Sequence record: LC768500.1
Strand: one strand, 5' to 3'
Length of the DNA: 64,000 nucleotides
Part shown: positions 28,306 through 44,254 of the stretch, piece by piece
How the letters are laid out: each line of letters begins with the position of its first letter
Numbering within the stretch: position 1 is the stretch's first letter
Translations under genes and position numbers: made by a program
Notes under the pieces: generated by a model
Told to the model about the DNA's origin: nothing
Databases searched by the model: none
Seen by the model: the letters and a program-made list of their open reading frames with translations, nothing else

Positions 28306-29538
28306 CTAAACTAGAGCATGGATTTTGAACACAAAGCCAGTCACAAGGTCATCGCTAAAGTAACGGTTACGGAAAGCATGATAGAGATCCCCCCCGTTAT
28401 CGACGCCCGTGAGGCCATTAACGTAATCCGGGGTTAACCGGATATCGGTACTCCACAGCATTTGGTTACCACCTCTTTTAGAAATATAAGAGGGGAACAG
28501 GCCGTTGCTCAACATAAGAGGATGAGCGTAGGTGTCGTTAACCAAGAAGACTGTAGGGTAGCGATAGGTGATCAGTGGAGTTATCGTAATCCCGAAGTCT
28601 GGATTATCAAACACCACAAAAAAACTGTTTTGATTTAAAAGAAGTGCTTTAAACGTTTCCGCAGTATAAAGCTTATCTTTAGCAATGACTTTACGTTCCT
28701 TAGGATAAAGGTTACTTAAGTCAACGTAATTAAGAGATTCGAAAATTCGCTCGGGCCATTTATAATGACGGTAGTCGATACGTAGTCTTTTCTCACCCGT
28801 TCTTGTAACCAGGGGAGAACCTGTGACTAATCTTCCAGCGATAACTAACCAAACCTTCTTATCTTTGATAGGAACGTCTAGTTCGACTTCTAAACCAGTG
28901 AATCCATCTTCGTCAATGAACTTTATCATATCTTCGGTAAATGGACGTGTCTCTAAAGCAGATACTTTGGAGAAGTCATAGATGTCAACGTGACTGCTGT
29001 CATTAATGCGGTAATTCTTCCCGCCGTTTAAAAGATAGATCCCGTCGTCTCTACTTATTCCTCTAATGAAATGCCCGTTGAGATTAAAAAGACATTTCGT
29101 GATAAGGTCGTCGTATTTGCGGGTTGTCACAATGGTAGTTAGTAACAGATCCGGCGCTTCACTAACACTAACCAGGGCTTGACGATCCACGGACAACAGA
29201 TGATTAGCCGGAGCGATACGATAGCCGCTTAATTGAGCGTCACCACGTTGAACATAAACCAACTTCTCTCCCGGGAGTTCCGAAGAGAGAGTAAGAGGAT
29301 CGTTCTCTTTTGTCAGCAGCCAGGCTTCAATGGTCCCATCGAAAGTTTGAAATTCATACTGATAGTCAAAGGCGTTTAAACAAAGTTGTTTACCTACTAA
29401 TTCGTCGAGAATAACTATTCGTAATTTACTGTAGGTTTTAAAGTACTGGTTGGTCTTTAAAGTGCTTAAATCTACAACGGCTTCTCCAGCGTGCCCTGTG
29501 AGAGCAACGCCTACGGCTCGTACATACTGATAAGACAT
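28306..29538 (-). CDS. conserved phiKZ-like virion structural protein
   Basis: about 410 aa; start moved to ATG 29538 (GAGGG RBS); divergent from the tail-fibre cluster. Confidence 0.55.
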   Translation of the reverse strand: MSYQYVRAVGVALTGHAGEAVVDLSTLKTNQYFKTYSKLRIVILDELVGKQLCLNAFDYQYEFQTFDGTIEAWLLTKENDPLTLSSELPGEKLVYVQRGDAQLSGYRIAPANHLLSVDRQALVSVSEAPDLLLTTIVTTRKYDDLITKCLFNLNGHFIRGISRDDGIYLLNGGKNYRINDSSHVDIYDFSKVSALETRPFTEDMIKFIDEDGFTGLEVELDVPIKDKKVWLVIAGRLVTGSPLVTRTGEKRLRIDYRHYKWPERIFESLNYVDLSNLYPKERKVIAKDKLYTAETFKALLLNQNSFFVVFDNPDFGITITPLITYRYPTVFLVNDTYAHPLMLSNGLFPSYISKRGGNQMLWSTDIRLTPDYVNGLTGVDNGGDLYHAFRNRYFSDDLVTGFVFKIHALV

Positions 29539-29639
29539 AGCGCCCTCTTCCGGAATTCTATGGTTCATTATTTAAATTCATTCATAGGATCGGGCCGCTT
29601 AGCGTGGCGAGGTCTTCTAACCGCCAAACAGGATTCGAT

Positions 29640-32411
29640 ATGTCAGAATATTTATATCCTTGGAATCCCTTCCAAGATGATGATGACGCCCGTATCACTG
29701 GAGAGCTCGCGAGTGTACCCGGGGGAACCCGTGTGCTGGTCGTTCCTAGAGCCGCTCCTTTCTTTTCCGAAAACTTAACTATTGTCAATTCGGATACTAA
29801 TGCCCCGTTGGTATTAGGTGAAGACTACGTCTTCAGTTATCCGTTTATGGATTTTATCAAGAATTATTCCAAAAACGTTTATGGTGGGATAATTCTTCTC
29901 AAAGCAACCACCGCTTTGAACATTTCAATAAGTTATGACACCATCGGCGGGCCGTTCGTTTTAGATGACGTTGCGTACGCTGAAGCTGTGGCCAACATCA
30001 TCTCATCCGGGAGATTGGCAGATTGGAGTCAGGTCGTTAATCTCCCTTCTGGTTTCCCAGCCGATCCCCACGACCATCCAGAAAGCCAAACTTATAACTA
30101 CAACGAGTTCATGGCTAACCTCACTCTGATGATTGAGGCGATGAACAATGAAACGAATAACCCGACTGTCCAGACGCAGCTGACACAGCACAGTGCCGAT
30201 AACTTAAGAATCGCGCATCCCAACGGCGAGCCAGAGGATGTGGGATTAAGCAATCTTCACGATTACCCGGTGGCTCAAGAAAGTGATTTCGACGGTAATT
30301 CCAACCAGTTATATATGGTTCTTGGTATTACGAAGAAACTCATCGATAAAATGTTAGCCGAGTTCTTGAACGGATCGTTACCCGCTGACTTCGAAGAAAC
30401 GGTTCAAGAAATCTACGATCAAATGAACTCTTACTTGCAGCAAACGGCTACGCTCGCTGGGCAAGTTGATAACAAGCTGTCGAACACCATCAACGGTTTG
30501 GAAACCTTCGATAATGGCGCGACACTGACGTCAACCAAGGATATGTTATTCCATACCCCAACTAACAGTTGGTACTATTGGGGTGGGACTTATCCTACTG
30601 GCGGTTACGTTGTCAGCGGCGGGGCTTCCCCTTACGATGCTTCAGGTAATCTGATAGCCGGTTGGAAAGTGGCTGGTGCAGTTGAGCTTGAAACCAGACT
30701 CTCTTCGAAAACCATCGGCCTGGGTGGGGACATCGTAGGTTACACGGCAGTAGCTGGAGCAATAGCCCGTACTGTGAATGACCGACTCCGGGATACGATT
30801 AGTGTAAGGGACTATTATCAAAGTAGTGATAATGGTAACTGGGCCTTGGCTTATAACCGGGCTAAAGCAGTCAACCCTAAAGTTTGGTTCCCGAGATCCG
30901 ATTCTGCGTACATCGTTACTTCAACGTTGGCTCTGTCCGCTGGAGGTGGGATATACTCAAACGGCGCAACTATAAGCTCTCCTCCTGCGGCTGACGCCAC
31001 GGGTACAGCACTGATAAAGGTCATTTCGGCGACAAGTGTTTCCGACATCGAGCTAAGCGGGATAACTATCGATGGTGGGGTTAACGAAACACTGACGTCT
31101 AAAAACTACACTCGACCTGTTCAGATGACCGGATGCACTAATATTCGGTTTAGGAACGTTAGGATCGTAAACAATCCTGATTGGAGTTTTTCACTAGAAT
31201 CGTGTAAACAGATCATTATTGACAATTACTATCAACGTTCTTTCGTCTATGCCAACAGTGCGACGACTACATCGTTAGCGGGCGGTCGAGACGGCGGTCA
31301 CTTGATGGACTGTGTCGACGCAACATTAACGAATCTGGATATCGAGTCTGGTGACGATTGTATCGGGATCACGTCTAAACTGTCAGGCTGTGCTAACATC
31401 ACAGTGAGAGGGCTTAAAGGAAGCTCGGTTATCGCCAGTCTTCTGATTTATAACGAAGAACAGGACGGGTCGTCGAATTATTATTCGCAACCTTGTTCTC
31501 GTTTAAAATTCTCCGAGATCCATGTAAAAGATGGAGCTAACTGTCGCAACATCGTTCGAGTTAAGAAATACGGCTCTACTTCTGTCATTAACGATGTCTC
31601 GATAACGGGAGTAAGCGGGAAAGCCAATAACAGTTACGGTGTATGGGTGGGTGGTGTTAATAACGTTTACCTCAACGATATTAACGTCGAATCAACTCAG
31701 GTTCATGGTGCGTATATTGAGAACTGCTCGAGGGTAAGAGGTAACGTAAAAGGTAAAGCCAACGTTTCCACTTATCACGGCGTTATTGTGTACAACTCCA
31801 ATAACTGTGATCTGACATTGGATTCTGACCAATCTGCGGGTTACGGGATTTATCTGGATACGGTGAGTAATTCAGTAATACGTCCGTATTCATATAACTG
31901 TGGTGCTGGGTTATTCTCCTCTTCGGCAGGCGGTGGTTGCAGGATGGTGAACTGCTCCTACGTCAATATGCCTCAGGGCAATCTCTATGGTACTACAACG
32001 GTTTCCTATTACGGATTGAATTATTCGACTGGAAATACGAACTGTACCTTTGGGTTGGATCTGATGTTCTTCGGCCTGGTTCCTTCCACCAGACTGCCAA
32101 CCGCATATTACTTGAAGGCCCCTGCAGTCAGCCTTAAATTCAAAGAGGACTCCGCGGGAACTTTATCGACCTACTCCGCTATAGGGTGTACGTTGACCCG
32201 TAACGCCGCAGGGAACTATACCGTTGCGTTCTCAAGCAATATGAACTCGACCGGTTTCCAGTGGGTGTTGGAAGCTTACCATAACGGGGCCAGAAGAACG
32301 GTTCAGTTATCTTCAGCGGTGACGGTAGGTGGGTTTAGTTTCTTGACCCAAGACTCGGCCGGAACAACAACATATGCCGATCATGTTAGTTTGATGGCTT
32401 GGAATACTTAA
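29640..32411 (+). CDS. tailspike / polysaccharide depolymerase: phiKZ-type anchor, tailspike head domain and GH28-like beta-helix
   Basis: start moved to ATG 29640; VVPRAAPFF anchor shared with neighbouring fibres; WYYWGGTYP head domain; RTVNDRLRDTISVRDY beta-helix entry; RDG...ESGDDCIGI...RVK motifs. Confidence 0.82.
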   Translation: MSEYLYPWNPFQDDDDARITGELASVPGGTRVLVVPRAAPFFSENLTIVNSDTNAPLVLGEDYVFSYPFMDFIKNYSKNVYGGIILLKATTALNISISYDTIGGPFVLDDVAYAEAVANIISSGRLADWSQVVNLPSGFPADPHDHPESQTYNYNEFMANLTLMIEAMNNETNNPTVQTQLTQHSADNLRIAHPNGEPEDVGLSNLHDYPVAQESDFDGNSNQLYMVLGITKKLIDKMLAEFLNGSLPADFEETVQEIYDQMNSYLQQTATLAGQVDNKLSNTINGLETFDNGATLTSTKDMLFHTPTNSWYYWGGTYPTGGYVVSGGASPYDASGNLIAGWKVAGAVELETRLSSKTIGLGGDIVGYTAVAGAIARTVNDRLRDTISVRDYYQSSDNGNWALAYNRAKAVNPKVWFPRSDSAYIVTSTLALSAGGGIYSNGATISSPPAADATGTALIKVISATSVSDIELSGITIDGGVNETLTSKNYTRPVQMTGCTNIRFRNVRIVNNPDWSFSLESCKQIIIDNYYQRSFVYANSATTTSLAGGRDGGHLMDCVDATLTNLDIESGDDCIGITSKLSGCANITVRGLKGSSVIASLLIYNEEQDGSSNYYSQPCSRLKFSEIHVKDGANCRNIVRVKKYGSTSVINDVSITGVSGKANNSYGVWVGGVNNVYLNDINVESTQVHGAYIENCSRVRGNVKGKANVSTYHGVIVYNSNNCDLTLDSDQSAGYGIYLDTVSNSVIRPYSYNCGAGLFSSSAGGGCRMVNCSYVNMPQGNLYGTTTVSYYGLNYSTGNTNCTFGLDLMFFGLVPSTRLPTAYYLKAPAVSLKFKEDSAGTLSTYSAIGCTLTRNAAGNYTVAFSSNMNSTGFQWVLEAYHNGARRTVQLSSAVTVGGFSFLTQDSAGTTTYADHVSLMAWNT

Positions 32412-32717: not shown

Positions 32718-32785
32718 AGTCGATTTTATGATTCAGGCTTAATATTCGTGGAGTGTGATACTCACTCCACCACGAGGTGAGATCA

Positions 32786-35700
32786 ATGAACTATCCTAAT
32801 ATTCCCGAATACCGTTTGGATATCACGGGGAAAAACCCAGAGAACTTAATTCATTTTGAACAGCTTCAACGAGAAGATGATGTTCGTAAAATGATCGTCG
32901 TCCCTCGTCACGCTCCATTTTACATAGAAAGCGTAATTTTAACTTTCCCTGACGGCACACCGATGGTTTACGGGACTCATTATGAATTCTTTAATATCAT
33001 GGGAGAGCTTTCTCGCAGAACAGGGAAGGCGGTTGGGTGTTTTATTAAGATTTTGGATAAAACGATAACCCGATTTAACGCTCGTTACCAGACGGTCGGT
33101 TCGGTTTCTCTTTTCGACAAGAGCTTCTTAGATCTCTATAACGCGGTTATAGATGATCAGAGGTCAGTATGGTTTGACGAAATCGACAATAAACCCGCAT
33201 TGTTTGATCCAGAGCAGCACGGGCATGATGTCAGATACGGCGTGTACGCCTTTAAAGATCTCGCAGACGCATTCGAGCAGATGGTAGCCAACACCGTAGG
33301 CGGTGAAGGGTATCACGCACCCTATGAAGAGTTCTTCGTCCAGCGCATCAATAACGCGATCAGTTACCTTTCACAAGTACAGAGTCGTTGCATAGCACTA
33401 ATTAACGAACACGCCAGTAACAAGATCAATGTGCATGGTATCGATAATGTTAAAGTAGGATTGGGTAACGTTGATAACATCGGGACTTACACTTCCGATA
33501 ATTGGGGGGGTACTATCGATGACAAACATCGTATAACTCCAGGGTATCTGAAAAAGTTAGCCGAAAACACCACTGTGGATCTTAGCAACTTGGTCCAACC
33601 TGGCGTTCTCCCAATTGCTCGCTACGGTGAAAACTTTTACATCCCTCCGGTTATCGATGGATCCTTTAAAGGGGTTGGGACCAGACAGCCTTGGCGAGTG
33701 GCCTGTTTAGAAAGAAACGGTTATCTAGTGGCAATAGGTAATTACAAGGACGTCAATACAGACGTGTTGATGTACATGTATAACAAAACCCCGTTTGTTT
33801 CACCGGCCAATTCCAGTAACTGGATAAATACGCGTTATGAGTATAACCCCACTCGTGCTGTTGAAGACGGTGTTAAACTCACCACGGTCATTAAAGGCGG
33901 TGATTATCGCTGGATGATTGTAGGTAACGACCAAACCAACAAGTGGTACGTGGTTAATTGTAATTCTACATTCAACCCGGTGAGTCATGTTCTCACGCCA
34001 ATCAGTAATGTGGACTTTTTCTCCAACATCAGCCACATCAGAATGGCCGTTTGTGGAGAGAGCATCTATCTGTTTAAGGTTACAGACACGCAGGCCGATG
34101 GACGCAAATATGTGACGATGAGGAAGATCGATGTAAGTTCTGTTGATGTCAACACAGAGAGTGTCGCTCTGACCACACCTTCGCTTATTTACACCGATTC
34201 ATCTAATGCCAGTAAAACATCTACGACCGGGGTTTTCGATCCTTTCGTTGTTACCAAAGATGGGTCTAATAAAGTAACCAAAGTGTTGGGTAGTTTTAAC
34301 CCAGTACTGGACTATATTGAGATGGAAAGGGACATTCATATTGAAATGATTCCTGATCCGACTAACCCCACTGTGAGTTATATGCGTTGGTGGACCCCTT
34401 GCATGCATCATCTCGGGACCAAAGCAGTAACGACGACCTACTCCCCGTCTTGGAAATTACAGGAGAGTGGTGGGTTTACAACGATGACGTGGACGAAAGG
34501 ACTAGGGTCTGCTACGATGAACATCACCGCGTGGGATTTGAATTACGCGCCGTGGATGGCTAAACAGAACACAGCGAATACTGCCTTCTTCCAACAAACC
34601 TCATCGTGGTTCCACTCCGCAGCAATGGGTAATGGATTTACTGGCTCATCTTCAATACTCTCTAATGATGCAAGATTCTCATGCGCGTCAACCCACTGGA
34701 ATTTTTTCCCGTTACTGACCGCAACGAGCATGCCGGATTTCTTTACGTCTAACGACCCTTCCACATTTACGACCGCTGATCCAGCAATAACAAATATGGA
34801 TGTTAATGAGGCCGGTGGATATAACCTTAGAACTTTGGCATGTGGGATAACCAACACCACGGTCTATGGATCAGCACCAGCATCAAGTTGTCAGTCCACC
34901 TTGCCATTTACTGAGGCGAATAACTCGATAACGCATTATGAACTTATTAAGTCTGAAGTCAATGATGATACCTTTGTTCATACCGCCAAATTGAGAACGG
35001 GCGATAGAACAACGGCTTCGGTATACGACGCCAACACTTATTACCATATGAGTTACACCAACGACATTTATAAGACCAATATCCCTCCAAGGGGGGTACG
35101 AGTCTCTTACGTTGATGAAATGAATGCGGCTAATAAGGGAGAGACGTTCTTCTCGGTGACCGGCGGGACGGTTTATAGTCTGGGTACCGGGCTTCAGGAT
35201 AATCTGTTAACTCACTCTTTCACTACGACCAGAGATTCTTCCACCAGGACGTTGTCGTTTAACCCATCTCTGTATGTTCAAATTACTAATGCTTTGGTTT
35301 TGTCTTTAGTAACGGCGAACTTCCCAAATGCGGCGGCTTACTATCAAAAAGCTTGGACTTTGTTATGGGTGCCAGGGAAAGAGAGTATTATCGCCCCTAT
35401 GCTGATCGTAGAGTGGATGGGGACGGGTTCTGATACTAACGCCTATATCGGCGTGATGACGTTGAACGTAGTTAAAAACCCAACGTTGACCACTAACCAA
35501 ACCGCGACTGTGAATGGTGTAAAAACCTGCGTAATGAATGTAGGTGATTTGACAGTAGCCAACAAATATACTGTGACGAACGGAACCTATTCTGGCGATC
35601 GTTCTTGGTTTGATGCGATTGGCAACCACTACATCAACTCAGGGTATTTCACTGTTTATCGCAATGCGTCTGGCGAAGTATCTTTCTATTGGGGTTCTAC

Positions 35701-36400
35701 CAACTCTAAGAACTACGGAAGCCCAACCAGTTATGGTGTGGCTAAAACAGCGTACCTGTCTGGTAAAATGTCGGGACCGAAAGTTATTTCTGCTATTAAT
35801 AACTACCCTGGCGGAAGAGATATGCTGGGATCCGTCGTCTACGCGTTAAAAGGTGTCGGTCTATTGCTGATTTCCGATACGATGTCTACTGATATCTTTG
35901 TGGGCGGTGGTATTACTCCGGCTAAGCTGGCGGGGACTACCTACCAGTCGGTTCTGGATGGATATGCCAACACAGCTTTGTTAGGATCGTTCTACATCAT
36001 CGCTGACATCATTCCGGTCAATCAATGGACGTTGTTCTTCTCAGCGAGCAAGATCGTTTTGAAAGGAACCTATTTCGAACTGCCCGTGGGTACTCTGACA
36101 TTAACAGATTACTTCACCGATGTTCAAAATAAAACGTTCTATTTGTTTTTAAAACTCACTGAAGGTAGCCCGGTATATGAGTTGTCATCAACTATGTTGT
36201 CGGAAACCTCGACGTGTATGTTGATAGCGACGGTTACTACCGATAACTTCAGCATTGTTTCTGTAGATACACAAAAGGTCTTTTCAATGACCGGCTATCG
36301 CGTGTCGTCTCAAGCTATCGGTTCGATCATACCTGGGTCGACCGGGGGGATCAACGAATTGGGCGAGACACCGTGGCTGTCGTCTACCTTGGTTGATTAA
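32786..36400 (+). CDS. large tail-fibre protein, paralog A
   Basis: start moved to ATG 32786 (GAGGTG RBS); VVPRHAPFY, HGIDNVKVGLGNVDN and FYIPPVIDGSFKG motifs shared with paralogs; conserved C-terminal domain. Confidence 0.8.
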   Translation: MNYPNIPEYRLDITGKNPENLIHFEQLQREDDVRKMIVVPRHAPFYIESVILTFPDGTPMVYGTHYEFFNIMGELSRRTGKAVGCFIKILDKTITRFNARYQTVGSVSLFDKSFLDLYNAVIDDQRSVWFDEIDNKPALFDPEQHGHDVRYGVYAFKDLADAFEQMVANTVGGEGYHAPYEEFFVQRINNAISYLSQVQSRCIALINEHASNKINVHGIDNVKVGLGNVDNIGTYTSDNWGGTIDDKHRITPGYLKKLAENTTVDLSNLVQPGVLPIARYGENFYIPPVIDGSFKGVGTRQPWRVACLERNGYLVAIGNYKDVNTDVLMYMYNKTPFVSPANSSNWINTRYEYNPTRAVEDGVKLTTVIKGGDYRWMIVGNDQTNKWYVVNCNSTFNPVSHVLTPISNVDFFSNISHIRMAVCGESIYLFKVTDTQADGRKYVTMRKIDVSSVDVNTESVALTTPSLIYTDSSNASKTSTTGVFDPFVVTKDGSNKVTKVLGSFNPVLDYIEMERDIHIEMIPDPTNPTVSYMRWWTPCMHHLGTKAVTTTYSPSWKLQESGGFTTMTWTKGLGSATMNITAWDLNYAPWMAKQNTANTAFFQQTSSWFHSAAMGNGFTGSSSILSNDARFSCASTHWNFFPLLTATSMPDFFTSNDPSTFTTADPAITNMDVNEAGGYNLRTLACGITNTTVYGSAPASSCQSTLPFTEANNSITHYELIKSEVNDDTFVHTAKLRTGDRTTASVYDANTYYHMSYTNDIYKTNIPPRGVRVSYVDEMNAANKGETFFSVTGGTVYSLGTGLQDNLLTHSFTTTRDSSTRTLSFNPSLYVQITNALVLSLVTANFPNAAAYYQKAWTLLWVPGKESIIAPMLIVEWMGTGSDTNAYIGVMTLNVVKNPTLTTNQTATVNGVKTCVMNVGDLTVANKYTVTNGTYSGDRSWFDAIGNHYINSGYFTVYRNASGEVSFYWGSTNSKNYGSPTSYGVAKTAYLSGKMSGPKVISAINNYPGGRDMLGSVVYALKGVGLLLISDTMSTDIFVGGGITPAKLAGTTYQSVLDGYANTALLGSFYIIADIIPVNQWTLFFSASKIVLKGTYFELPVGTLTLTDYFTDVQNKTFYLFLKLTEGSPVYELSSTMLSETSTCMLIATVTTDNFSIVSVDTQKVFSMTGYRVSSQAIGSIIPGSTGGINELGETPWLSSTLVD

Positions 36401-40004: not shown

Positions 40005-43000
40005 ATGATCATTTTAGATGAAACCATTCCTCCTAATGGTCAAGAGGATGAGCGCTTCGGTCTTTTACTTTACGCGTTAACTGACTACGGGATTAAAAGG
40101 GAGTTACAGCACGTCGCCAGTGTGGCGGTGTTGACCGATAAAGTTGCCGAAGCGAATGCTAAGATGACATCGGTCAGCTCAGCGGTAAACGATGCTCTTG
40201 ACGCCCACATTGCGACAAAAGGACCTATCCATGGAGAGACCAAGGAAACGATAGGTCTGGGTCTTGTTGACAATTTACGGACGGCTACGTTAGAAGAACA
40301 TGTTGACGGTAGCGACGACCTGTTCTGTACTCCTGCTGGAGTAAAATACGCGGCTCAGTTTTTGGTTGAACCTGATTACACCGGATTCATCCCGCAGACC
40401 GTACTCCCTATTGCTTATTTCAAAAGACTGACTGGGGATCTGAGTATTAACTCAACCTCGTTTAGTCCATGGACTCAGAGTAACAAGAAAGGTAACCTGT
40501 ACATCACAGACGGTGCTTATTACGTCAGCCTGTTAAGTAAGAATGGCGGTGGAGTCAACTACCTGAGTGATCTTTTAACATCAAGGGATTTGATGTACTT
40601 CACACCTAGTGGTGGGACGACAGTACCTAAACTGGCATACGGCTGGAACGCTAAGACGGGATACCAAATCCTGAGTGATGGTTCTAAACAGCTTACCTTC
40701 TTCGATTACACTCACAATGGTACTGGTGGGGAGTTCGCTCTTAATTTTTCGGGGTCTGTAACAGGTGACTATCTGTCGACCTTATTCGATCCTTTACTCG
40801 ACACGTCTTCTTTAATAGGCGGGCTGCGCTTAACTCAGGCTGGATTAAATGTCACTCTGACGACTATTACCCAGCCAGATGAGTCGGTCGCAACGCTACT
40901 GGTGGACAACACTACCGGTTTCAGTTTTAATGCCACAGGACCGAAGGGAACGGTTAGAACAGGGACGATTAATAACCTCATTCCTTTAGCCGACTTCATC
41001 ACGGTAACGGACGCTACGGCGGTTACAATTGACCCGACCTACACAGCCATTGACCAAACCCATGGTTATGGGAATATGGAATGGGAGGTTAAGGGGAAAT
41101 CTGCGATCCTTTACACCGATGCTATCCTGAGGACAACATTCCAGGGAGTCGTTAAGAAGATCGTCGCCAGAATAGCGTTAAGGTTGACGATAAGTGGGTC
41201 CACTTACACGATCACTCCCTTGTCTCAAGTGAGTATGGCGACGATAACTGCTGGCGCTATTGCTGTATCTGGGAACATCCTTTTTGAAGAAGAAATTGAT
41301 AACGCTTTACACCCCGTTTACGGAAAAGGTCCGTTCTTAAGCGAGGGTGGGCACGCCACATCAATGGCTTCCAACCAAAGCTTCTTCTTAAGGGCGTTTA
41401 CCCACAATCTAACTAACCTCGTTGACCTGGCTAAAAACTATCACGAAACCCTTTCTCTTTCTGGGGAGTATACAAAGGAATATCCGGGTAGTTTTGCGGC
41501 TCCGATAGGGGTGAACATTAAACGCTTCATACCGTTTAATAGTACTGCTTCGGGGTTAAAGGTTTTAACCTATCCGATGGCCAATACCTCAGAAGACTAC
41601 TACGGGGTATTAAGTTGGGATAGCCCTCAGATTCTCCAGTCGTCTAAGAACAAGCCGCTGTATTATCGGTTCAAGCAGGCGGGCTCTTTAACCAACTTTA
41701 CATTAAGCTCTACCATACCGACCAGGCTGATTGTTAACTCCGGTGCTGATGGCAGTGTTACTGTGAGGGGGCTGAGTTTCTTACGCAGCGATTATACTGC
41801 CGGTACGGGTAAACTGGTCATTACGGAGAATGAGGTTAAAGCGTCGGAAACTTGGGCGTTGGACGCCGACTCCATTACCACAATGGAATCTATCTTGTCG
41901 ACGTTCTCCACCAGAAGTCACACAGCGTACACTTCTGCCGGCGTGGCGTACGACGCAACTAAACAGTCAATGAGCTGGTCTGTTGGGATTTTGACGACCT
42001 CTGACGACATTACCGCAGTAACAAGATGTGTTGTGTTATTATCAGATGGTTGCGGTTATGTGGGGTGTCAAATCGTTCCTACGACGCCTAATAGCGGAAC
42101 AAGAACGTTTACCATCAACAGAGCGTCATTGGGTACACTGACATCCATGACCTTTGGGATGGCTGCTGTTCCTGATTTTAGTGCGGCCGAATATCTGACC
42201 CCGCCAGCGTACAACGACATAATGGTATTAACTCGTTCCGATAATTCGTTAGAGATCGCATTTAATAACGCGTTTAAAACGAAGTACGGGATGGCGTCAT
42301 TCTTATATTCCGGAACAACACTGACGCTGGATAAAATAGAAAATCCAAGAGTCAGTGTAGGGAATTTCCCCATCGTCGGGAAACGCGGCTGTTGCCCTAT
42401 CAGCGTTCCTTACTACGGTATTTTCAGGATGACGGATAACGAGGAGGAGTTTTTCAACGCCAACCTCAATCGTTATCTTAACCAGTATGGTGATTTAACG
42501 GACGACGTAGTCACTATGGGGGGTTCGGATTATCACCTAATCAGAATCCCTGCCGGGACCAAAGTGTTCTTGGATGGTCGAGAATTCCAAATGATCTCCG
42601 GTTTAGTCGTCTACGCTCAGGTAGGAGTGACGTCGTATATTTATCTCACAGCGGCGGCCGATAACGTAATGGCTGAGGCCAGAACCGTAAAATCAGAACC
42701 TGCTGTTGATGAAATCATTTACGCAGTAATGGATGAAGCGGGGAATCTCGTTATCAATGACACGTACACGGTCATCGACGGATTCGCAGTGTCCTACACT
42801 CGTCAGGGTAGTTCTATCCCGTATACCACGGGTTACCCTATGGATCTTGGCGAAACGCTCTTCTTTAAAACAACCTTCGGGGATCCAGATCTCGATGTAA
42901 TCATGAACTCTACCATGCCAGAGTTTGGCGGGATGGAGTACATGCCTGATCTTGATGAGGAGATCAACGACATCATTCCTTCTTGGGATAATCTCGAAGA

Positions 43001-43220
43001 TCAAGCCATGGACCTCATGATGAACCAGATTCTCCCAGAGGATATTGGAACATTGGAGGAAAATATCGATGAGCGCATCAACGAAATTCAACCTGAGTAC
43101 GTCGAAGACTACAGAGATTCCAACGACATCATTGTTAACCAATTGATGCCGGAAATAGGTATGTCTCGATTTGTATTGACGGATTATATCGTTAACCAGA
43201 TCTTACCTGATTCGGAATAA
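40005..43220 (+). CDS. large tail-fibre protein, paralog C, with C-terminal repeat extension
   Basis: HGETKETIGLGLVDN motif; C-terminal domain (RQGSSIPYTTG) homologous to A and B, followed by six 19-aa repeats. Confidence 0.8.
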   Translation: MIILDETIPPNGQEDERFGLLLYALTDYGIKRELQHVASVAVLTDKVAEANAKMTSVSSAVNDALDAHIATKGPIHGETKETIGLGLVDNLRTATLEEHVDGSDDLFCTPAGVKYAAQFLVEPDYTGFIPQTVLPIAYFKRLTGDLSINSTSFSPWTQSNKKGNLYITDGAYYVSLLSKNGGGVNYLSDLLTSRDLMYFTPSGGTTVPKLAYGWNAKTGYQILSDGSKQLTFFDYTHNGTGGEFALNFSGSVTGDYLSTLFDPLLDTSSLIGGLRLTQAGLNVTLTTITQPDESVATLLVDNTTGFSFNATGPKGTVRTGTINNLIPLADFITVTDATAVTIDPTYTAIDQTHGYGNMEWEVKGKSAILYTDAILRTTFQGVVKKIVARIALRLTISGSTYTITPLSQVSMATITAGAIAVSGNILFEEEIDNALHPVYGKGPFLSEGGHATSMASNQSFFLRAFTHNLTNLVDLAKNYHETLSLSGEYTKEYPGSFAAPIGVNIKRFIPFNSTASGLKVLTYPMANTSEDYYGVLSWDSPQILQSSKNKPLYYRFKQAGSLTNFTLSSTIPTRLIVNSGADGSVTVRGLSFLRSDYTAGTGKLVITENEVKASETWALDADSITTMESILSTFSTRSHTAYTSAGVAYDATKQSMSWSVGILTTSDDITAVTRCVVLLSDGCGYVGCQIVPTTPNSGTRTFTINRASLGTLTSMTFGMAAVPDFSAAEYLTPPAYNDIMVLTRSDNSLEIAFNNAFKTKYGMASFLYSGTTLTLDKIENPRVSVGNFPIVGKRGCCPISVPYYGIFRMTDNEEEFFNANLNRYLNQYGDLTDDVVTMGGSDYHLIRIPAGTKVFLDGREFQMISGLVVYAQVGVTSYIYLTAAADNVMAEARTVKSEPAVDEIIYAVMDEAGNLVINDTYTVIDGFAVSYTRQGSSIPYTTGYPMDLGETLFFKTTFGDPDLDVIMNSTMPEFGGMEYMPDLDEEINDIIPSWDNLEDQAMDLMMNQILPEDIGTLEENIDERINEIQPEYVEDYRDSNDIIVNQLMPEIGMSRFVLTDYIVNQILPDSE
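42894..43217 (+). repeat. six tandem ~19-aa protein repeats D-x-x-[IMV]-N-x-[ILT]-[ILMQ]-P-[EDS]
   Basis: conserved Asn at offsets 5, 25, 44, 63, 82, 101 of the last 108 aa; Asp at -4 and Pro at +4 in all six copies. Confidence 0.85.
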
Positions 43221-43224
43221 CGTT

Positions 43225-43260
43225 TATAGCGGAGAGGGGCGTGAGCCCCTCTCCGCTATA
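43225..43260. terminator. bidirectional terminator
   Basis: TATAGCGGAGAGGGGC-gtga-GCCCCTCTCCGCTATA, 16-bp stem between converging genes. Confidence 0.85.
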
Positions 43261-43267
43261 TTTATTG

Positions 43268-44254
43268 TTAACCGCCGCCAACCGGCATACCACCTGTACC
43301 GCTGCCACCTGAATTGCTATGACGATGTTTCAATAGGGATACCGCACCACCCCCTGCTGTAACATCACCTTTGGCATTTATAGATTCTTCTGCGTTAATG
43401 GTTCCTGAACACTGCATGGTTCCATCACCGCCTTCACCCGCAATTGTGGTAATGTTACCCGCCACACCCAGGTTACCAATAACTGATGTGTTAGCCTTTA
43501 TATTCACTCCTTCTGGAGCAACGACGTTGACGTCTTGCGCACTAACCAGCATTTGTTTGCAGATTATGCTTAATAGTTTATCGGCACTAATTCCAAATGT
43601 GTCCGCGCACTTAATTAAGATGTTCATCTTAGCCAGTGTAATTTCTGACCCATCCTGATTTCGTACGCTCGTGGTGTGCGACATCGAATCGGTAGCGATG
43701 ATGTTGCCTTCACCATCCCCAAGGAGAACGGTCCCTGCTTGGGCGTCTACTTGGAATTGATATTTGGTCTTCTCTCCGTTAGCTTGGGATGTCATAAACC
43801 CAACTTTACCCGTGTGGGTGGAGATCTCAAACGTGTAATAGTTATCCAGAGAGAATTCAGCATTCTCGTCTAAATTAGGATTGGCGGAAAATCCCCAAAC
43901 CACTGTCTCCAGTCGTTTAGTCTTCGTATCGACCCCATGGAGTGTCCAGAGTAATTGATCTGAATCCCCATACCGATATATGGCAACTGGTGTCCCTTCT
44001 CTGACATCCGGAGCCGTCATTCGGTTACCGCCGTCACCCATCCACTTAGCCGTCACTGAGTTAGATCCCAAAACCTGAGAAGTTTTGTTAGTTCCGTCGG
44101 CTGTTTGCGATGTTTGAACAGAGGTTTGGGCTGTGGCGACTTCCCTACCATCAGCCATCATGTTATACGATGGAAGGGAAACGGTAATTTCTTTTGAGTC
44201 AGTTTGTTTAGTCGATGTTACCGTTCCGACACCTAAACAATTCAGTAAATTCAT
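43268..44254 (-). CDS. baseplate central spike (gpV/gp138-like)
   Basis: N-terminal OB-like region (APDVREGTPVAIYRYGD), beta-repeat C-terminus, HxH metal-binding tip LLKHRHS. Confidence 0.8.
   Translation of the reverse strand: MNLLNCLGVGTVTSTKQTDSKEITVSLPSYNMMADGREVATAQTSVQTSQTADGTNKTSQVLGSNSVTAKWMGDGGNRMTAPDVREGTPVAIYRYGDSDQLLWTLHGVDTKTKRLETVVWGFSANPNLDENAEFSLDNYYTFEISTHTGKVGFMTSQANGEKTKYQFQVDAQAGTVLLGDGEGNIIATDSMSHTTSVRNQDGSEITLAKMNILIKCADTFGISADKLLSIICKQMLVSAQDVNVVAPEGVNIKANTSVIGNLGVAGNITTIAGEGGDGTMQCSGTINAEESINAKGDVTAGGGAVSLLKHRHSNSGGSGTGGMPVGGG

Follow-up and report, generated by a model that had tools for sequence, protein, structure and literature searches.

The stretch of DNA analysed here (the window; 64,000 nucleotides of record LC768500.1) derives from Klebsiella phage phiKp_32 (LC768500, 100% identity), a 251-kb Miami-like myovirus belonging to the nucleus-forming chimallivirus jumbo phages. 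One of its genes encodes a tail-fibre protein, termed paralog C, which ends in six units of an acidic 19-residue repeat. The repeat is real, non-random, unnamed and confined to one small phage clade. Within the peripheral baseplate fibre complex of chimalliviruses, it appears to be a lineage-specific module at the C-terminus of arm C, fused after a shoulder-like beta-sandwich and a neck-like segment. The preferred explanation, held tentatively and at somewhat less than an even chance, is that it forms a small, regular, counter-ion-dependent repeat domain that serves as a distal binding module and replaces a receptor-binding head. The structure of chimallivirus baseplate fibres is only now emerging, and neither in phiKZ nor in Goslar have the distal ends been modelled.

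Anatomy of the acidic repeat

The gene and the elements of its tail (lengths in amino acids, aa) are as follows.

40005..43220, + strand: fibre paralog C, 1071 aa, at the phiKZ gp135 position, 100% identical to a phiKp_32 'hypothetical protein'
42894..43217, + strand: acidic repeat tail of C, residues 964-1071, last 108 aa, six units
42894..42923, + strand: motif 1, DVIMNSTMPE
42954..42983, + strand: motif 2, DEEINDIIPS
43011..43040, + strand: motif 3, DLMMNQILPE
43068..43097, + strand: motif 4, DERINEIQPE
43125..43154, + strand: motif 5, DIIVNQLMPE
43182..43211, + strand: motif 6, DYIVNQILPD, not present in the distant ortholog P0005

The pattern D-x3-N-x3-P occurs exactly six times in C, with D at residues 964, 984, 1003, 1022, 1041 and 1060 and Asn at residues 968, 988, 1007, 1026, 1045 and 1064, which gives an Asn spacing of 20, 19, 19, 19 and 19. 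A preliminary description of the sequence had quoted this spacing together with six ten-residue strings, and both agreed exactly with the protein. The motif count reached at most four in 20,000 shuffles of the complete protein and at most three in 200,000 shuffles of residues 956-1071, comprising the tail and eight upstream residues. The same description had judged the DNA copies too diverged for a recent duplication, which was borne out: Tandem Repeats Finder reported no DNA-level repeat, and the 30-nt motif cores share only 40-63% nucleotide identity in pairwise comparison.

For the unit alignment, the six units of C were combined with the five units of P0005, an ortholog encoded on a Logan contig (n=11). 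D(-4), N(0) and P(+4) were identical in 11/11 units, so that the invariance first claimed for C alone extends to the distant ortholog. Hydrophobic residues occupied position -1 in 11/11 units, positions -2 and +3 in 9/11 and position +6, often aromatic, in 8/11, followed by positions -5, -3 and +2 with 7/11 each, and position +5 was acidic in 8/11. The 19-residue unit can thus be described as a 12-residue core, phi-D-phi-phi-phi-N-x-phi-phi-P-E-aromatic (phi, hydrophobic), plus an acidic connector of ~7 residues. The whole tail carries a net charge of -25 over 108 residues, with just three Arg and no Lys, and has a hydrophobic fraction of 0.40 vs 0.34 for the remaining body of C.

Distribution and selection

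Carriers of the repeat are limited to seven Miami-like records, one metagenome contig and the distant Logan contig encoding P0005. The array was not found in a scan of IMG/VR, a JGI metagenome scan returned a single near-identical phage contig as its sole match, word-index protein searches yielded three clusters only, and no other protein of the 251-kb phiKp_32 genome contains the motif array. P0005 is 46% identical to C overall and 52% identical in the tail, slightly above the whole protein; its five units are spaced 20/19/19/19 and retain the D/N/P positions, and the connectors between the repeat cores are likewise conserved between the distant orthologs. The proposal that the motif is kept at the protein level therefore holds, as the DNA copies have diverged, yet D, N, P and the 20/19/19/19 spacing persist in a 46%-identical ortholog. 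Among six Miami-like genes, the ratio of nonsynonymous to synonymous substitution rates of the tail was 0 to 0.22, based on few substitutions, by which measure the tail is under purifying selection.

Low synonymous divergence in the tail was also considered as a sign of nucleotide-level constraint, which was rejected, since the 5' end of gene C is equally low and the middle is variable. In comparison with L001 and L007-L010, synonymous variation was three- to fourfold lower over the ~108 codons at either end of C than in the middle. This suggests that gene C may be a mosaic with a recombining central body between conserved ends. One record in the comparison, OR529409 'Stenotrophomonas phage BUCTxx100', has a gene C 96% nucleotide-identical to those of the Klebsiella phages and seven anchor-bearing tailspikes alike, and its host label, Stenotrophomonas maltophilia, looks doubtful.

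Domains preceding the repeat

Two further elements separate the repeat from the body of C.

42522..42764, + strand: beta-sandwich domain, residues 840-920, common to paralogs A, B and C
42765..42893, + strand: neck-like segment, residues 921-963, with invariant S, G, I-P and G

An AlphaFold2 (AF2) model of residues 840-920, built on a 6-sequence alignment, gave predicted local distance difference test (pLDDT) values of 67-86; the neck-like segment had low pLDDT in the monomer model. With VIA-align, the beta-sandwich model reached Z 5.8-6.8 against Mtd residues 71-172, residues 49-144 of the receptor-binding protein (RBP) of lactococcal phage p2, and the tail fibres of A-1(L) and HFTV1. At this level, 12 entries for phage RBPs or fibres superposed over 72-83 residues, and the next unrelated match reached Z 3.1; Foldseek E values were only 0.04-0.6. 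The predicted fold of residues 840-920 appears to resemble the shoulder or intermediate domain of phage RBPs. As a putatively shoulder-like domain precedes it, the repeat would stand where modular RBPs carry their head.

The two upstream paralogs, A and B, both stop a few residues past the conserved segment preceding the repeat, as had been described, and EL gp116 also ends just after the neck-like segment. EL gp116 (956 aa) is homologous to C until ~residue 939. In Joad (Erwinia phage) and RisingSun, gp101 (1109 aa) has an unrelated ~135-aa module in place of the repeat. This C-terminal module of Joad gp101 (L003:11851-12255), for which no Pfam match was found, is beta-rich-looking and occupies exactly the place that Miami-like phages use for the acidic repeat. 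The C-terminus of arm C thus appears as an exchangeable site, with nothing in EL, a globular module in RisingSun/Joad and the acidic repeat in Miami-like phages.

Search for known repeat families

The repeat had not been recognised as a named one, and it remains unnamed: the tail had no match in Pfam or PHROG, sequence and profile searches of the PDB gave chance-level matches only (E >= 0.3), and no described precedent for the 19-residue repeat was found in the literature. A search of 1.84 billion representative proteins with a profile of the unit retrieved two clusters of C, an archaeal acidic repeat protein and three spurious partial matches, leaving its own orthologs as the only true relatives. 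With no relatives outside two phage lineages, an unfamiliar fold is likely.

The archaeal protein, P0008, contains DIIVNEVMPE eight times with a 53-residue period and was rejected as a relative, being judged a convergent or partial match, as were P0009 (an immunoglobulin-like repeat protein) and P0010 (a helical repeat protein). P0008 is an extremely acidic protein of 647 aa (L005:2709-4652, archaeal contig JAZRYJ010000040.1). Its gene lies between a Na+/H+ exchanger gene and, on the opposite flank, genes for a NikR-like regulator, ZIP and TerC. P0008 is possibly a metal-related protein, and its likeness to the phage motif is probably convergent. The core motif also occurs singly in globular enzymes of the PDB, namely dihydrodiol dehydrogenase and an ArsA-type ATPase, where it presumably forms a buried strand followed by the Asn and Pro.

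A formal likeness can be seen to the short bacterial leucine-rich repeat (LRR) of YopM/IpaH type, a 20-residue unit with the consensus LxxLxLxxNxL. LRR units run from 20 to 30 residues and are hydrophobic at positions 1, 4, 6 and 11. The phage repeat shares the hydrophobic positions -5, -3 and +2 around an invariant Asn, a phi-P-E-phi string after it and a period of ~20. It differs in its period of 19, in a Pro that is nearer to the Asn by two residues, in the lack of conservation at the first Leu position and in the Glu found at position -3 in 3/11 units. No LRR family appeared in Pfam at E<=10 and no LRR chain in the PDB profile search. A short LRR identity was therefore rejected, having no profile support, a period of 19, and hydrophobic residues at the equivalents of positions 1 and 6 in just 3/11 and 7/11 units. 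LRR domains are annotated in other chimallivirus fibre paralogs (PMC13742148).

No RTX, EF-hand, dockerin or cadherin-linker profile matched the tail in Pfam, and none was among the weak PDB matches. RTX beta-rolls and the phage repeat have in common that both are tandem acidic repeats expected, from their charge, to need counter-ions for folding; RTX repeats are Gly/Asp-rich nonapeptides folded by Ca2+, whereas the phage repeat lacks the Gly pattern and a Pfam match. A C-terminal chaperone of the Peptidase_S74 kind was also rejected, with no Pfam match on C or its tail and no Lys in the tail for a Ser-Lys dyad.

Possible roles of the repeat

The position of the repeat, its fixed period, its conserved connectors and its hydrophobic content favour a small regular repeat domain. 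In such a domain, five or six units would stack, with the invariant Asn and Pro closing each turn, and the net charge of -25 would permit folding only with bound counter-ions, Ca2+ or Mg2+; putative Ca2+ binding by a tail of this charge is physically plausible. One copy of C would be present in each fibre complex, beside the tailspike trimer, by analogy with the phiKZ hetero-hexamer. The repeat would then be a distal binding module that most likely points towards the host envelope, without providing a rack of one site per tailspike.

Several points weigh against this proposal. The Glu at position -3 in 3/11 units is a poor fit to a buried strand, and the tail falls on the disordered side of the boundary in a charge-hydropathy (Uversky) plot. 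An AF2 monomer model of the C-terminal 206 residues, from two sequences only, had an overall pLDDT of 37 and was uninformative for the tail, where pLDDT was ~30 and short helices ran from after P-E to Asn. No ion-binding or solenoid family matched the tail in the Pfam and PDB searches. Moreover, the host-facing role is drawn from position and analogy, and the single-copy stoichiometry of C is taken from a low-resolution phiKZ model. In favour of a folded domain, a composition-based disorder score placed the tail within the range of the folded body of C.

The low pLDDT and the Uversky plot would suit a disordered multivalent docking strip, whose units would act as short linear motifs, each capturing a partner in the virion, e.g., a tailspike anchor, and folding on binding; this is considered unlikely. 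Seven phiKp_32 genes, just past the window end (LC768500 126998-145295 = L006:1499-19796), have in common an N-terminal tailspike anchor of ~55 aa; siphoviruses of ~46 kb (Sf11, Jersey-like and Klebsiella siphophages) carry homologous anchors. When the homologous Sf11 anchor was used as a probe, four anchor-bearing tailspikes were counted in Miami, seven each in phiKp_32, YC1, ZK_P1 and BUCTxx100, and nine in KPN8. In favour of docking, phiKp_32 lacks homologs of the siphoviral tail-tip proteins to which anchors of this kind would attach, and EL and Joad, in which no Sf11-type anchors were found, are also without the repeat.

The numbers argue against it. The repeat units are six in all six of these Miami-like phages, whether they have 4, 7 or 9 tailspikes, which contradicts the expectation that copy number would track tailspike number and leaves a rack of one site per tailspike unsupported. 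The related suggestion that six units mirror the six-fold symmetry of the tail is weakened by the five units of P0005. The fixed spacing and conserved linkers would be unusual in an array of linear motifs, the anchors are neutral to slightly acidic and not basic, thus offering no charge complementarity, and the same anchor is common in siphoviruses and also occurs in Aeromonas chimalliviruses, neither of which carry the repeat. In addition, 19 residues per site would be tight for trimeric spikes of ~200 kDa, and the absence of the array from other phiKp_32 proteins also counts against docking.

A more specific version, with a rather low probability, is that the strip is a new adaptor from which a changeable set of 4-9 siphovirus-type capsule depolymerases hangs. 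Each unit would add a strand or helix to an anchor and so capture it, perhaps under the control of Ca2+. If true, it would explain how Miami-like phages, in which the DUF7941 fibre system of other chimalliviruses was not found, gained many tailspikes. The preliminary idea of a docking strip corresponds to the scaffoldin-like or branched adaptors of CBA120/RaK2-type phages, in which one protein of a many-depolymerase phage offers several docking sites. Known tailspike adaptors use folded domains, whereas C has 19-residue acidic units with a copy number independent of tailspike number.

Docking by head-to-tail fibre modules of the DUF7941 type was rejected, as the family was not found in phiKp_32. 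DUF7941 modules were proposed to be universal in chimalliviruses in the Goslar paper (PMC13742148). PF25613 (DUF7941) matched phiKZ gp126, gp127 and gp143 and no tested window protein; it was not found in the whole phiKp_32 record by profile, phmmer or jackhmmer with the phiKZ proteins, although the control genomes were unmatched too and the sensitivity of these searches is unproven. The 84-aa open reading frame (ORF) of the locus, which had been suggested as a partner of the repeat, is an unlikely one, being acidic and swapped for an unrelated 64-aa protein at the P0005 locus. Within the tailspike cluster, a 259-aa ORF with the anchor and without a beta-helix (L006:8398-9177) precedes a 445-aa ORF without the anchor, the start of which lies within a beta-helix (L006:9333-10670); by sequence, the two look like one tailspike gene split in two.

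Somewhat less probable than a docking strip is a coiled-coil-like or helical needle, in which the units would be acidic amphipathic helices punctuated by Pro and would lengthen the fibre; the needle could be homotrimeric if C trimerises. Helices were predicted by AF2 in every unit at the places given above, the hydrophobicity has periods of 4.75 and 3.75 residues, equal to 19/4 and ~19/5, and hydrophobic residues recur at -5, -1, +2/+3 and +6. However, the confidence of the model is very low, three successive hydrophobic residues and a Pro every 19 residues suit a continuous coiled coil poorly, and the phiKZ analogy points to a single C chain per complex.

A tail with no specific partner is similarly improbable, whether as a polyanionic brush, by which the fibre tip would stay soluble or be repelled from the anionic capsule, or as an assembly aid that is removed from or dispensable in the mature virion. 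The charge of -25 and the lack of Lys would fit, as would the heavily capsulated hosts, Klebsiella and Raoultella, and EL does without any extension. A brush would not need the invariant D, N and P, the fixed period and the hydrophobic cores conserved at 46% identity, and no chaperone signature of the Peptidase_S74 type was found in C.

Comparison with other fibre systems

A regular repeat domain at the distal end of C can be compared with the heads of modular RBPs. In lactococcal p2 ORF18 and Bordetella phage Mtd, the shoulder or intermediate beta-sandwich seems to be matched by that of C, whose C-terminal position is swapped between lineages as heads are. In contrast, p2 ORF18 and Mtd carry a lectin-like head where C has a polyanionic 19-residue repeat, and at 8-17% identity the likeness is one of fold level only. 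Among chimalliviruses, phiKZ gp133-gp135, EL gp116 and Joad gp101 share with C the same locus order and a homologous N-terminal attachment domain, and EL and Joad are homologous to C up to ~residues 939-955. The phiKZ proteins gp133-135 have only ~460 aa, with bodies that differ from C, and the acidic repeat is present in none of phiKZ gp133-gp135, EL gp116 and Joad gp101.

If the tail is indeed a cation-dependent binding domain or a tailspike adaptor, part of the host recognition of Klebsiella jumbo phages would be explained and a compact engineering handle would become available. If the tail is dispensable, the finding is a curiosity.

Locus of gene C

The genes around C and the remaining elements of the locus are the following.

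28306..29568, - strand: phiKZ gp130 homolog (blastp 1.2e-20)
29604..32411, + strand: tailspike at the gp131 position, 935 aa, with a gp131-like N domain (2e-15), Tail_spike_N and a GH28 beta-helix
32420-32674: small ORF at the gp132 position, 84 aa, acidic, isoelectric point (pI) 4.3
32777..36400, + strand: fibre paralog A, 1207 aa, at the gp133 position, stops after the neck-like segment
36393..39959, + strand: fibre paralog B, 1188 aa, at the gp134 position, stops after the neck-like segment
40005..40424, + strand: N-terminal chimallivirus fibre-attachment domain of C, ~residues 1-140, a shortened gp131-like N domain
43225..43260, no strand assigned: hairpin, 16 bp, GC-rich, T-rich tail on the + strand, separating gene C from the convergent gp164-like gene
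43268..44254, - strand: phiKZ gp164 (central spike) homolog, convergent with C, phrog_3216 (blastp 6.5e-24)

Gene C is the third fibre paralog gene after the tailspike and the 84-aa ORF, and the locus order matches phiKZ gp130(-)/gp131/gp132/gp133-gp135. The N-terminal domain of C was recovered by tblastn in 74 jumbo-phage records, among them EL, OBP, Goslar and PCH45, and was similar to phiKZ gp131 residues 183-289 (blastp 1.5e-5) and to gp132 (4.6e-4). C residues 40-140 match phrog_2163, phrog_3573 and phrog_11029, and the phrog_14667 match on C is limited to residues 1-921. By its homologous N-terminal domain and its synteny, C is assigned to the chimallivirus gp131-like fibre paralog family. 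The phiKZ atlas describes twelve fibres below gp130, each with a candidate hetero-hexameric base of gp131x3 + gp133 + gp134 + gp135 (PMC13250141). By this analogy, C would sit in the virion at the peripheral baseplate (PMC13250141).

The stop codon of C at 43218-43220 is followed by the hairpin, which is likely a terminator and perhaps serves both gene C and the gp164-like gene, indicating that the repeat is the genuine C-terminus of the ORF. At the gp132 position, neither the 84-aa protein of phiKp_32 nor the 64-aa, coiled-coil-like protein of its distant relative (L002:2469-2663) resembles gp132, and the match to gp132 was found instead in C residues 60-110.

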